From Phaeosaccion multiseriatum (lineage: Eukaryota; Protista; Ochrophyta, other classes), in assembly GCA_965112735.1 (NCBI GenBank), contig OZ218955.1, positions 3,410,001 to 3,474,000 on the forward strand: 64,000 nucleotides of DNA, in the 5' to 3' direction. A program made the position numbers and the translations under genes. Shown here piece after piece: positions 18,542-31,951 of this stretch. Each line of letters opens with the position of its first letter. The first letter of the stretch is position 1. Below the pieces are notes generated by a model that was not told the DNA's origin, did not search any database, and saw only the letters and a list, made by a program, of their open reading frames with translations.

Positions 18542-21500
18542 TCATTCATGACTATCACTGTCACACTCTCCTTCATAAAGCTGCACAACAAAGAGCAAAG
18601 CACCCGCATCACAGAAGTCGTACCGTCCACATGAAGCGTAGAGAACCACCACGAGGAGACGGCGAGGCAAAGTAGTGTAGGCAGGCAAGAGGTGAGTAGA
18701 AGGTCAGTGCAATGCGGTGGGGCAGAGGTGCAAGCAGTAAGAGAGGGGCGAAGAGAAGACAAGAGAGCTGTGCCTGTCAGTCGACCACCCTTGAGATTGA
18801 TGTCTCGCTCCCTCCCCCGCTCCTCACTCGTCAGTCGACCGCCTTTGATCGGTCTCTCCCTCCCTCCCTCCCTCCCTCCCTCCCTCCCCTGCTCCTCAAT
18901 CCTCAGTCGACCGTCTTTGTTTCATCTCTCCCTCCCCCCCCTGCTCCTCCATCGCATGGCAATCCCCCAGAAAAGGTGTGACTAACGCCCTTAAACTCTT
19001 ACAACTGACAACCAACACTTACGTATGTCCACATCACCTCTCCGCAGTCGTTCTCTGCGGCGAGAGCGCACGGATTGGAGAAGGTCTTGCGCGTGTCCGT
19101 TGCCGCGTCCTCTGCACAGACGGGCACAAAATCTGCGGTACAGATGCGGGCGCACTCCTCCGGCTCCTCGCACTCACCCTCGTACGCCTGGGGCGGCCAG
19201 GCAACCACGCAGAGCAGTCAGGCAGCCAGGCGAGGAGGACATGAGGGCCAAACACGGCAATGGTGGGATCAAAGTCAGATAATAGACAAGCGACAGCACG
19301 CTGGCAGTGATGAGTGCTCCATCCACACGCCCTCGAGAGTCTAAAGGGGAACCTCCCCTCCCCTCCCCTCGCCTCCCTTCCCTTCCCCTCCCCTTGCCTG
19401 CCTTGCCAGTTCCCCTCCTTGGTAAGAGAAAGAGGCACACAAGTCTATAAACAGCCACCCCCCCCCCCTTCCTCCCCCCCCATCCACTGCCATCGCCGTA
19501 CTAACCAAGGTCCACTCGACGTCTCCGCATTTGTTCTCTGCGCTCAGACCACACGCATTTCCGAAGGTCCTGAACGCTCCCTCGGGGTTCACTGCGCACA
19601 GCGGTACGTACTCTAGGGTACAGAGAATTGGGCACTCGACTTCACCCCCGTCCGTACACACGGCCACGGGCGGGCAGGGGTCTTGTCCAGGGGCGCAGGG
19701 CGTGTCGAGGAGCTCACACGTCTGGCCCTCCTCGCACTTGCCAGGCTCACAGGTGTCTGCGCATACCACCACCATCACCAACCGGACAACAGAGAGGGAG
19801 GAGAGCAAAGGGAGCAGCAAGGAAACCAGTTGAGCTAGGGCATATCGTTAGGGCAGAGCAGCAGCAGCAGCAGCAGCAGCCGCAGCAGCAGCCGCAGCAG
19901 CAGTATGTCGTGCGCAAAAAGAAGGACCTGTGGCACCAGCCCATCTAGCGTACCTGCACAGTAAGGATTACCACTTCCGTCCAAAAGGCACTCCGTGAAG
20001 GGGGGGCAGCGGATAGTGGCGCATCCGGTGGGAGGGGGGGGTGTATCGACACAGACAGCCACGGGAGGGCAGGGCTCTTGGAAACATTGCACCTGCAGAT
20101 CGGGAGAGAAGGGGGGGGGGGTGGTGGGGGGTGAGTGGGTGAGAGAGAGAATGCGAGGAGAACGCAGAGACGGAGAGAAAGGGGACGGAGAGAGAAGGCG
20201 TGTGAGAGAGAAAGGGAGAGTGAGTGAGAGGGAGACACACAAAGGAAAAATATGGAAAGACTGCAGTACTTGAGTGCAAGAGCCCTCTGCGATTGGAGGA
20301 GTACTCAAGGCCCGAGGGGGTGGAAGGGAGGGGCGGACAAGAGGAAGATAGAGCTATGAGTCTGAAGGGAAATTTGCGTGGATGAGAGGGCGTATGGCAG
20401 CAACTAACGTACCTCTTGAAGTTCACACGTCTCGCCCTCCTCGCACCTCCCAGGCTCACACGTGTCTGCTTGGAGGAGTCCCCACCATCACGCAGAAGGC
20501 AGGAGGAGGGTCAGTAAGGCGTGTGAGCAGTCCATTGAGGACGGGCAGGTACAGACAGACAGACAGACAGACAGACAGACAGACAGACAGACAGACAGAC
20601 AGACAGACAGACAGACAGACAGACAGACAGACAGACAGGGCGAGGCACGAACCTGCACAGTAAGGATCTCCCTCTCGGTCTTCCAAGCACTCCTGGAAGG
20701 GGCCGCAGCGGATAGTGGCGCATCCGGTGGGAGTGGGAGAGCATGTGGCCACGGGGGGGCACGGGTAGACCCCCGGGGCGCACGGCGTGGGGAGGAGCTC
20801 ACACGTCTCGCCCTCCTCGCACGTCCCATCAGCACAAGTGTCTGAGCCGAAGCAGCACCAGCAGGGAACAAGGGAGTAGCGGGAAGAAGAGAGGGATAGA
20901 TAGGCAGGGCAGTCGAGTCAGGGCACAGCAGTAGCTGTAGCAGTAGCAGTAACAGCAGTAGTTGTAGTAGTAGTAGCAGCAGCAGCCAGGAGGCGAGGCG
21001 AGAAGGACGCGCAGGAGGACACATGAAGTGCGACAATCCTTCAAGCACCAACCTGCACAGTAACCATTTCCGTCTCGGTCTACCAAGCACTCCTGGAAGG
21101 GTCCGCAGCGGACGGTCGTGCACCCGGTGGGAGGGGGGGGCGGCGCGACACAGACAGCCAAGGGAGGGCAAGGGGCGCGGACGCATTGCACCTGCAGACA
21201 GCGACAGATAGTAGGAGAACGACGAAGGGAAGGGTGGAAGGGAGGGGGAGTCAGGAAGAGAGGACACAGCCAGGAGCTCTACTTGAAGCACTATCAGAGC
21301 ACTGCTGAGCCCTCGGCGATGGATGACGCACCTCTTGGAGCTCGCAGACTTCCCCCTGCTCCTCGTCGCATCGCGAAGGGTCACATAGGTCCGCACAGTA
21401 CTCCTCCCGTGATGTTCCTCCTTCTTCCTCGTACACGAGACACTCTTGGAAAGGCTTGCACTTTGTATCTGTGCACTCATCAGGTGTAGAGCTGCACCCT

Positions 21501-22209
21501 TCGTGAAGCGCAGCCAAGTCTTCTTCGCTCAGCGAGGACCACAGCTGGGGGGAGGAGCAGGAGTTGATGCGATAGTCCGACCACACGTCTCCGGAGATGA
21601 AGAAGACGTATCTGGGGAAGCAGGGGGAAGCAATAGGAGGCTGGCGTTAGAGATGTGTCAGAGGAAGTGGGAGAGGAGCTGCCTCTGAGCACAGGCCGGG
21701 CGTGGGGTAACTAACATCCAAGAGAAGCTTATGGTTGAACTTACTCCTCGAGGTTCTCCTCGTCGAAGGGCAAGTCCACCCCACAAGCCGCACTGCTCTC
21801 ATTCGCCGTGACGATGATGAAGCGTTTTACCTCCTTGCCATTGAACACGTGAGTCACAAAAACGCCGTAGAGAATGGAAGCATTGTTCAAGGAAATCGTC
21901 CTAAGCTCATCTTCGCCCAGGAAGGAGGGAGTTTCGTCGAGGAAGCGAGTCTTGGCAAAGACTGTACCCTTCAGCACCACATCTGCAAAGGGGTGAAGAC
22001 CAAGGGAGGGGCGTGAGCGGAGAAGGGGGGATAATGAGTAACAGTGGGAAAGGCTCTTTTATTGAAGTGGGGAACGGCTTCTCCTTTTTCTTCCTGCGCT
22101 TGCCTGCTCTTTGGAAGGTCTCGCAAAACGTTGACTGTAAGCAGCTACACCCACTGGAGAAGGGTACGAGGATCAGCCCCGCGAGCACCCTCAAGAAGAA
22201 GTCCTTCAT
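18542..22209 (-). CDS. Secreted TIMP/NTR-like + Cys-rich repeats + 2 Kazal domains, copy 1
   Basis: Signal MKDFFLRVLAGLILVPFSSG then CSCLQSTFCETFQRADVVLKG...SSAACGVDL...YVFFISG...INSC. Next come Cys-rich repeats (CATIRCGPFQECL...PYCADTC) and Kazal motifs CTLEYVPLC...TFGNAC and CTADFVPVC...TFSNPC. The last exon is LYEGECDSDSHE*. Confidence 0.8.
20551..20637. repeat. (CAGA)n microsatellite in copy-1 intron
   Basis: Direct inspection. Confidence 0.95.
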
Positions 22210-29999: not shown

Positions 30000-31951
30000 T
30001 TAAATGCCATCCTCGTTGGCCTTCTTCCTCCTCCTCTTGCAGCGCTTTCTCTTCTTCTTGCTCGTCTTCTTGCTGCATGGGTCCTCCTCGGGCTCGCCAC
30101 ACTCTCCATCGTAGACCTGGTGCAGGCGGGCAGGGCAGGCACAAACAGGTAGAGCAAGCAAGGCCGAGTAGGGCAGAGCAAAGAAGCAGAGCAGCCAGGG
30201 AGACAGGCGGGGAGGAGTTGAGGGCCAAACACGGTAAGGGTGGGACAAGCTCAACGTGGCGGCACAAAAAGTCAGCCCACGAAGCCTGCCTGTTTTCTCC
30301 TTGGCACACTGCCCGCACTTACGTAGGTCCAGACGATGTCCCCACATCCATTCTCCGAGGCAAAGGTGCACTCGTTGGAGAACGTCTGGTACGTGCCCGT
30401 TGCCGCGTCCTCCGCACACAGAGGGTGATGCTCTTCGGTGCAGGTACGACTGCATTCGAGGTCCTCCTCCACGGGCACGGGCTCCTGATCGGGCTCCTGA
30501 TCGGGCTCCTTGCACGCTCCATGGGAGACCTGGATCAGGCAGTCAAGCACGCAGAGCAAGAGCAGGCACAGCAGTCCGTGAGCCAAAGGGCGAGGAGGAG
30601 GTGAGTGCCAATCACGGTAAGGCTAGGACAACAAGGCAGCCAGTGCAAAAAGTCAGCCCACGAAGGGTTGAAGCGTGGTCTCGCCTTTTGCCACACAGAC
30701 TGCCCGCACTTACGAAGGTCCAGACGATGCCCCCACAACCATTCTCCGAGGAGAAGGTGCACTCGTTGCCGAAGGTCTTGTGCATGCCCGTTGCCGCGTC
30801 CTCCGCACACAGTGGGCGGTACTCCCTGGTGCAGAGATGGCGGTTGCACTCGAGGTCCTCCTCCACGGGCATGGCCTCCTGCTCGGCCTCCTCGCACGCT
30901 CCATCGGAGATCTGTTGTAGGCAGGCAACCAAGCAGAGTAAGAGCAGGCAGAGGAGAAGGTGAGGACCGACCACTGTAAGGGTACGACGAAAAGGTAACA
31001 GCAAAAAGTCAGCCCACCACGAAGGGTTGAAGAGTGTTGACTCACGTAGGTCCAGACGATGTCTCCACATCCATTCTCCGAGGCGAAAGTGCACTCGTTG
31101 GCGAAAGTCTTGTGCGCGCCCCCCGCCACGTCCTCCGCACACAAAGGGCGGTACTCTCTGGTGCAGATGTGGTTATTGTTGCACTCGAGGTCCTCCTCCA
31201 CGGGCATGGGCTCCTCCGCGGGCTCATCCTCGTCGGGCTCCTCCAGCGGAGAGCTGCAGTCTCCTCCAAGCCCAGCCATGTCTTGCTCACTCAGCGACGA
31301 CCACAGCTGAGGGTAGGAGCAGGAGTCGATGCGGTAGCCAGACGACTTGTCTCCATGGATGAAGAAGACGTAGCTGGCAGACGATGACAGGGGAGAAGGG
31401 GGGAGCGGCAACAAGTTGGTTGGCTGTGTATCAGATGAGGAGGCAGGGGCGGGGGGGGTGGGGCAGCCGATTACAGGTGGGTAGGGTGGCTGAGTGGGGT
31501 AGGCACTTACTCTTCAGCAGTTTCGGGTAAGTTCACGCCGCAGGTGGCGCTAGATGCCGGGGTCGTCAAGATGATGGACTCAGCTTCAAAACCTTCCCCG
31601 CCCTTAAAGACTTGCTTGACAACGACCCTGTAGCTATAGTCGTCGTCGAAGGCATCTTCGACTGTAATGAGTGTCTTGGATTCAATCTCTCCCCTGAGAA
31701 CCAGGCCTGGAGGTGAAGGGAGGCCAGGGGGTTTCGGGGGGAAGTGTGGAGGGAAGAGTGAAGAGCGAGAGAAGGGGTGATATTGGCATGAAGAAAGGAC
31801 CAATGTCCGGCACGACTGAGCAGGTGGGGCGAGGCCACTGACCTGCGAATTGCGCTGTCTCGCACACTTCCTGAAGTAGGCAAGTGCACCCGCTGGAGAA
31901 GGGAAGGAGGGTGAGAGCAACGAGGGCTCGCAAGAGAAGTTCCACCAGCAT
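30000..31951 (-). CDS. Secreted TIMP/NTR-like + 3 Kazal domains + basic tail, copy 3 (diverged)
   Basis: MLVELLLRALVALTLLPFSSG|CTCLLQEVCETAQF...ASSATCGVNL...YVFFIHG...IDSC. Kazal motifs CTREYRPLC (x2) and CTEEHHPLC. Tail CSKKTSKKKRKRCKRRRKKANEDGI*. Confidence 0.8.

Follow-up and report, generated by a model that had tools for sequence, protein, structure and literature searches.

The inhibitory head of animal tissue inhibitors of metalloproteinases (TIMPs; Pfam PF00965, MEROPS family I35) is an N-terminal domain (N-TIMP), which in TIMP-1 contains six cysteines at positions 1, 3, 13, 70, 99, and 124 that form three disulfides. A TIMP-fold or NTR-type domain is combined with Kazal or follistatin modules on one secreted chain in WFIKKN1/2 (GASP) and in agrin, and WFIKKN mixes inhibitor classes. 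Because the NTR domain of WFIKKN is C-terminal, it lacks a free Cys1, and WAP, Ig, and Kunitz domains are present on the chain as well. The NtA domain of agrin binds laminin and has no C-x-C motif. RECK, a membrane-anchored and cysteine-rich inhibitor of matrix metalloproteinases, contains Kazal motifs and is tethered to the cell surface. Here we analyzed a window of 64,000 nucleotides from the ochrophyte Phaeosaccion multiseriatum (contig OZ218955.1, positions 3,410,001 to 3,474,000), in which the region 18542–31951 holds three neighbouring minus-strand genes, termed g1, g2, and g3, whose products are predicted to join a TIMP-like N-terminal domain to one to three Kazal domains.

TIMP-type proteins have been described outside animals. 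In the red alga Pyropia yezoensis, a secreted PF00965 protein (py03343.t1) is induced by oomycete infection and was proposed to block metalloproteases of the pathogen; compared here by description only, it was reported with a TIMP core domain, and Kazal has 0 occurrences in the main text (PMC6928737). A TIMP-like partner of a metzincin has been described in Listeria (PMC8235301), and work on animals placed the origin of TIMPs in eumetazoans (PMC10755359). An earlier note on this DNA, which proposed the combination of TIMP-like and Kazal domains, knew of no such architecture in algae. Full-text literature searches found no description of a TIMP and Kazal fusion, in algae or elsewhere. The novelty claim of the note has to be narrowed, since mixed-class inhibitors are known in animals, TIMP-like proteins are common in bacteria, and the Pyropia protein (PMC6928737) shows that TIMP-domain proteins are not new in algae.

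The N-terminal domains of g1–g3 resemble animal N-TIMP (N-TIMP-2, PDB 2tmp) in several respects. C-S/T-C follows the signal peptide at once, six cysteines with nearly the same spacing are contained in ~120–135 amino acids (aa), and both a YxVxVKxxFKG strand and an SSAxCGV ridge are present. They differ from animal TIMPs in that the third cysteine is at position 9 instead of 13, and in that they are fused to other domains and belong to a non-animal eukaryote. The likeness to WFIKKN and agrin is one of layout and not of demonstrated sequence relationship, and the tested fragments gave no Pfam match to NtA (PF03146) or FOLN. RECK differs from g1–g3 in having no TIMP-like domain and another mechanism.

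The TIMP-like N-terminal domain

The region is intron-rich, with a eukaryotic setting and ~57% GC. Gene models were assembled manually, using translations in three frames together with the contexts of splice sites, and each has a continuous frame (all coordinates are positions in the window).

22209–18542, minus strand: g1, 10 exons, 532 aa, hand-built model
29187–23355, minus strand: g2, 13 exons, 693 aa, hand-built model
31951–30000, minus strand: g3, 6 exons, 384 aa, hand-built model

All three proteins share the same domain order, which is a signal peptide, an N-TIMP-like domain, and one or more Kazal domains, with ten-cysteine repeats inserted before the Kazal domains in g1 and g2 only.

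31889–31951, minus strand: signal peptide of g3, 21 aa, ending PFSSG (rule-based prediction)
22150–22209, minus strand: signal peptide of g1, equivalent of that of g3
29128–29187, minus strand: signal peptide of g2, equivalent of that of g3
31256–31888, minus strand: N-TIMP-like domain of g3, mature residues 1–120, exons 1–3 with two introns
21494–22149, minus strand: N-TIMP-like domain of g1, mature residues 1–134
28476–29127, minus strand: N-TIMP-like domain of g2, equivalent of that of g1

As read from the sequence, the signal peptides combine a charged n-region with a hydrophobic core of ~10 residues, and positions −3 and −1 are taken by Ser and Gly, respectively. Directly after FSSG come CSC in g1 and g2 and CTC in g3, which by the same rules are the predicted mature N-termini. 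The motifs from which the earlier note had started were all recovered in place on the minus strand. They included the signal peptide ending in FSSG followed by C-x-C in each gene, SSA.CGV.L, present as SSAACGVDL or SSATCGVNL in exon 2, and Y...G...I.SC, present as Y..G...I.SC in exon 3.

Each N-terminal domain is 120–134 residues long and contains exactly six cysteines, at positions 1, 3, 9, 71, 99, and 120 in g3 and at 1, 3, 9, 82, 113, and 134 in g1 and g2. The spacing in g3 is almost that of TIMP-1, on which a putative disulfide pairing can be based. The ridge motif before the fourth cysteine is SSATCG in g3 and SSAACG in g1 and g2, aligned to SSAVCG of TIMP-2.

The peptides encoded by exon 2 of the three genes were combined into a profile and compared by HMMER with 1.84 billion representative proteins. 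The search returned three matches and no eukaryotic relative, and one of the three matches was genuine (P0002, E = 6.6e-4). P0002 is a secreted TIMP-family protein of 162 aa with five cysteines, encoded on Bacteroidota-like metagenome contigs. It scored 29.0 bits on the Pfam TIMP profile (E = 1.1e-6), above the gathering threshold of 23.1 bits. The signal peptide of P0002 is followed by CSCLQ.T, compared to CSCLQST encoded by exon 1 of g1 (six of seven residues identical), and because exon 1 was absent from the query, this match is independent support for homology. In local alignments, the spliced algal N-terminal domains aligned to P0002 from Cys1 at 29–35 bits, and this nearest sequence relative shares with them CSCLQ.T, VLKG, YxVVVK..WKGG, and TPASSAACG. 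Unlike g1–g3, P0002 is a stand-alone protein with no Kazal domain and no introns. Its ESM Atlas model had template modelling (TM) scores of 0.67–0.70 to bacterial and nematode clusters annotated as TIMP/NTR, and TIMP-like proteins are numerous in bacteria, with ESM Atlas clusters in Bacteroidota, Actinomycetota, and Cyanobacteriota.

We also built a profile (A3) from P0002 and the algal exon-1 and exon-2 fragments; exon-3 fragments were left out, as MAFFT misplaced them. Searched against the PDB, profile A3 matched N-TIMP-2 (2tmp) at the top (E = 0.0095), followed by TIMP-2 (E = 0.023), with YRVVVK.VFKG...PASSAxCGV aligned on YEIKQIKMFKG...APSSAVCGV of TIMP-2. In the PDB, a profile of the exon-3 part had no match, and individual exons searched with phmmer brought up nothing beyond noise, namely titin, twitchin, and DnaK suppressor. 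Taken together, the Pfam TIMP match of g3 exon 2, itself below the cut-off (E = 0.0049), the score of P0002 above the Pfam TIMP cut-off, the A3 match to N-TIMP-2, and the six-cysteine spacing bear out the TIMP-like assignment proposed in the earlier note. On these sequence data, the N-terminal domain is very likely homologous to the TIMP/NTR superfamily.

The gene for P0002 lies at 6650–7138 of its contig (L001) among housekeeping genes (Peptidase_M42, acetyltransferase, and cytidylate kinase). No close relatives of P0002 were found in an index of 5.8 billion proteins, and searches with P0002 and with profile A3 returned P0002 alone. Nor did a relative turn up when contigs from metagenomes, bacterial genomes, and viruses were scanned for patterns. 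The two other matches of the exon-2 profile search, P0001 (L004, 3001–3699) and P0003, were rejected as relatives, being open reading frames (ORFs) of repeated units with the motif ESSACCGVNLA. P0001 is on a bacterial contig, and both scored only through this motif and resemble translated repeat DNA.

Kazal domains, ten-cysteine repeats, and C-terminal tails

Judged by sequence, the C-terminal domains of all three proteins are Kazal domains, with two in g1, one in g2, and three in g3, which agrees with the earlier note both in the assignment and in the range of one to three per gene. Four of the six domains scored above the gathering threshold of Pfam Kazal_1 (PF00050, 21 bits). By ovomucoid numbering, P1 is the residue two positions after the second cysteine.

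19170–19634, minus strand: g1 Kazal 1, loop CTLEYV, P1 Leu; fragment at 14.8 bits, below the cut-off
18563–19154, minus strand: g1 Kazal 2, loop CTADFV, P1 Ala; Kazal_1 24.8–26.0 bits
23454–23973, minus strand: g2 Kazal, loop CTLDYV, P1 Leu; fragment at 14.3 bits, below the cut-off
30894–31183, minus strand: g3 Kazal 1, loop CTREYR, P1 Arg; Kazal_1 30.9 bits
30512–30848, minus strand: g3 Kazal 2, loop CTREYR, P1 Arg; Kazal_1 25.1–27.7 bits
30099–30454, minus strand: g3 Kazal 3, loop CTEEHH, P1 Glu; Kazal_1 23.8 bits

The two sub-threshold domains, which were scored as truncated fragments, are ~50% identical to g3 Kazal 1. All six domains contain six cysteines once spliced, the sixth always being encoded by the next exon. 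The best PDB matches of g3 Kazal 1 were variants of the ovomucoid third domain (E = 3.4e-4), and its loop CTREYRPLC was identical at nine of nine positions. The loop C-T-P1-E-Y-R-P-L-C of the turkey and silver pheasant ovomucoid third domain (MEROPS I1) is found unchanged in g3 Kazal 1 and also in g3 Kazal 2, and g1 Kazal 1 differs from it by one residue. Compared to the ovomucoid third domain, the Kazal domains of g1–g3 have longer spacing between cysteines 3 and 4 and between cysteines 4 and 5 (C4-x7-C5), which is closer to the spacing in the Kazal sub-domain of follistatin/agrin modules.

Between the N-terminal domain and the Kazal domains, g1 and g2 contain cysteine-rich regions.

19635–21487, minus strand: cysteine-rich region of g1, 266 aa, 40 Cys, ~3.5 units
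23974–28469, minus strand: cysteine-rich region of g2, 456 aa, 70 Cys, ~7.5 units

The repeat unit is 63–66 aa long with 10 cysteines, follows the pattern DTC-x4-C-x5-C ... GC-x4-C-x5-C-x9-CA, and resembles small EGF/follistatin-N-like hairpins. The extra units of g2 match exons that have been duplicated, among them one of 189 nt that is symmetrical (phase 1-1). The repeats had no significant match in Pfam or the PDB, the best being TILa (E = 0.058) and a cysteine-rich eggshell membrane protein (E = 7.8). An AlphaFold2 (AF2) model of g1 exon 8 had a predicted local distance difference test (pLDDT) score of 61 and was not used.

In g3, which has no repeat region, the N-terminal domain is followed by acidic linkers and the three Kazal domains, and then by a polybasic tail. 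A similar tail ends g2, and the C-terminus of g1 is a short acidic peptide (DSDSHE).

30003–30071, minus strand: polybasic C-terminal tail of g3, 23 aa, mostly Lys/Arg, one Cys
23358–23414, minus strand: polybasic C-terminal tail of g2, equivalent of that of g3, Lys/Arg-rich, about 20 aa

The ten-cysteine repeat blocks, the polybasic tails of g2 and g3, and the position of the sixth Kazal cysteine in the next exon were not part of the earlier note.

Gene models, duplication history, and genomic surroundings

Each model is one unbroken frame across its introns, of which there are nine in g1, 12 in g2, and five in g3. All 26 introns have consensus ends; 24 are GT-AG, and the exceptions are the GC-AG first introns of g1 and g2, which begin with GCAAGC (22098–22103 in g1 and 29076–29081 in g2, minus strand). 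The start codons are at 22209 (g1), 29187 (g2), and 31951 (g3), and the stop codon of g1 ends at 18542, the coordinate at which the earlier note had begun the cluster. The mature proteins have even numbers of cysteines (58 in g1, 84 in g2, and 26 in g3), in keeping with extracellular proteins whose cysteines are all paired in disulfides. Between the N-terminal domains of g1 and g3, the nonsynonymous (dN) and synonymous (dS) divergences were 0.38 and 1.19 (dN/dS 0.32), and the Kazal repeats of g3 had dN/dS ratios of 0.39–0.54; these ratios therefore indicate purifying selection. The DNA of g3 was matched without one difference in contigs from four public runs, and these contigs are DNA because they contain the introns. 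The proteins of the window were not found in protein databases (searched with a stop-free ORF, with P0002, and with profiles).

The g1 and g2 genes are near-identical, with exons 98–100% and most introns 96–100% identical, and are therefore recent tandem duplicates or subject to ongoing homogenisation (gene conversion). The 600 bp upstream of their start codons are only ~64% alike. As far as sequence comparison goes, this combination fits a recent tandem duplication or gene conversion confined to the transcribed part. Public contigs over 28200–29900 show paralog-like variants. The g3 gene is diverged, with ~43% identity in exon 2. A tblastn search of gene pieces against the whole window found only the copies in g1, g2, and g3. 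Long (ACAG)n microsatellites of up to 628 bp at 24884–25510 and 26994–27621 fill introns 9 and 5 of g2, respectively, and intron 5 of g1 contains a shorter stretch (20551–20638); together, they explain most of the difference in intron size between g1 and g2.

The surroundings of the cluster in the window are as follows.

1006–4477, plus strand: single-subunit RNA polymerase of the phage (T7-like) type, exons (RPOL_N 5e-25, RNA_pol 3e-96), presumably organellar; ESM Atlas matches of one piece were phage clusters only
32132–34144, minus strand: open frame of 670 aa immediately upstream of g3, rich in Gly/Ser/Ala over long stretches, unmatched in Pfam
36994–40081, plus strand: exons of a TruD/Pus7-type pseudouridine synthase
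41687–42718, minus strand: exons of a CBM_4_9 carbohydrate-binding protein
45731–46525, plus strand: exons of a gamma-glutamyltranspeptidase

Proposed function and biological meaning

We consider it probable, though by no wide measure, that g1–g3 encode secreted, disulfide-rich compound protease inhibitors. From the identities and order of the domains, the placement of C-x-C right where cleavage is predicted, and the canonical Kazal loops, all read from the sequence, we infer secretion, an exposed Cys1, inhibition, the targets, and tethering as follows. Cleavage after FSSG would leave Cys1 of C-S/T-C as the free N-terminus of the N-TIMP-like domain. As in TIMPs, the catalytic zinc of a metalloprotease of the metzincin type would be chelated through the amino and carbonyl groups of Cys1, with the Cys1-Ser/Thr2 ridge inserted into the active site and Cys1 held beside the SSAxCG ridge by a disulfide to Cys71 (g3) or Cys82 (g1 and g2). 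The one to three Kazal domains would act on serine proteases in the standard manner, by mimicking a substrate, and each would block an enzyme that suits its P1 residue. Leu and Ala at P1 would suit chymotrypsin-, subtilisin-, or elastase-like enzymes, Arg would suit trypsin-like enzymes, and Glu would suit Glu-specific enzymes. The ten-cysteine repeats of g1 and g2 may serve as a rigid spacer separating the two inhibitor types, and the polybasic tails of g2 and g3 would probably tether the proteins to anionic cell-surface or wall polymers.

Several observations weigh against this proposal. The N-terminal domain is split over three exons, and its Pfam scores come from single-exon fragments. Exon 2 of g3 alone scored 17.1 bits on Pfam TIMP (E = 0.0049, profile positions 20–86), which is below the threshold of 23.1 bits, and no match was found for exon 2 of g1 or for the exon-1 and exon-3 fragments. 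The AF2 model of P0002, made with profile A3, was poor (pLDDT 54.5), and its Foldseek matches were meaningless, with TIMP-2 at rank 29. No protease gene was found in the window, and transcript support was not found, as all four public runs holding the locus were DNA contigs. Compared to animal TIMPs, the proteins lack the conserved Pro5 and also the C-terminal TIMP domain, since past the sixth cysteine the chain runs into ten-cysteine repeats or Kazal domains. N-TIMP alone is inhibitory, and the missing C-terminal domain bears on membership of the canonical two-domain family, not on the mechanism. Finally, many domains of the NTR/TIMP fold, including those of netrin, agrin (NtA), and sFRP, are binding modules and not inhibitors.

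The last point leads to the possibility that the Kazal domains alone inhibit, and that the TIMP-fold domain at the N-terminus serves for binding or anchoring, docking the array of serine-protease inhibitors to a partner in the wall or matrix. Most NTR/TIMP-fold domains outside TIMPs are indeed non-inhibitors, the absence of Pro5 would be consistent with such a role, and the N-terminus of agrin has a comparable layout, in which a TIMP-fold domain precedes follistatin/Kazal-like modules. Among the ESM Atlas look-alikes of g3 exon 2, the sole named families were bacterial TIMP and agrin NtA (rank 76, score 0.81), which are weak leads. However, NTR modules that do not inhibit mostly lie inside the chain or at its C-terminus and have no free Cys1, whereas in g1–g3 and in the bacterial P0002 the C-x-C begins exactly where the signal peptide is predicted to be cleaved. 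The SSAxCG motif of the inhibitory ridge is also conserved, and the Pfam match is to TIMP, not to NTR or NtA. We therefore regard a purely binding role of the N-terminal domain as rather unlikely.

Alternatively, g1–g3 could be structural, adhesive, or mineral-matrix proteins of the cell covering, in which inhibitor-like domains are used as stable disulfide-rich blocks, as in mollusc shells and coral skeletons. TIMP-domain proteins reportedly figure in papers on oyster shell formation, to go by their titles, and a tissue inhibitor of metalloproteinase is said to be mentioned once in a paper on the red coral skeletome. Features that would suit a structural protein are the ten-cysteine repeats, which make up most of g1 and g2 (266–456 aa), the strong acidity of the linkers, and the polybasic tails. 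This alternative appears improbable, however, given that the Kazal reactive loops are kept to the residue while P1 varies on a constant scaffold, a pattern typical of selection for inhibitory specificity, and that g3 has no repeat region at all. It is very improbable that the genes are silent or wrongly modelled, as pseudogenes or annotation artefacts, or that the TIMP resemblance is convergent or due to chance: although the locus was found only in DNA contigs among public runs, its proteins are absent from protein databases, and the database-level TIMP matches are marginal (E 0.005–0.01), the frames are clean across all 26 introns, purifying selection is seen between paralogs, the exon-1 motif outside the query matches the sole genuine database match, and the six-cysteine spacing equals that of N-TIMP.

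Returning to the reading of g1–g3 as compound inhibitors, the stronger version of it, in which a working zinc-chelating head of the TIMP type (I35) is combined with canonical Kazal units (I1) in a non-animal eukaryote, is held here tentatively, as a realistic possibility that falls short of probable. If this is true, the complete N-TIMP design, with a free Cys1, six cysteines, and the ridge, would exist outside animals, having either an ancient origin or a history of exchange with bacteria, and this would be at odds with a eumetazoan origin (PMC10755359). Judged from their sequences, the bacterial and algal TIMP-like proteins do not sit easily with such an origin, and a six-cysteine algal N-TIMP whose nearest relative is bacterial may provide a handle on how the fold has spread.

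If the N-terminal domain inhibits metzincins, g1–g3 would, to our knowledge, be the first compound inhibitors in which Kazal units are joined to a TIMP unit, and one chain would span metalloproteases and several serine-protease specificities. The variation of P1 and the tandem expansion of the genes, as seen in the sequence, fit an arms-race locus. Secreted inhibitors of this kind would be a plausible defence against grazers, parasitic oomycetes or chytrids, and algicidal bacteria, and could also regulate the alga's own wall-remodelling proteases. Should the stronger version hold, Phaeosaccion would possess a surface-tethered protease shield of multiple specificity against algicidal bacteria, parasites, or grazers.

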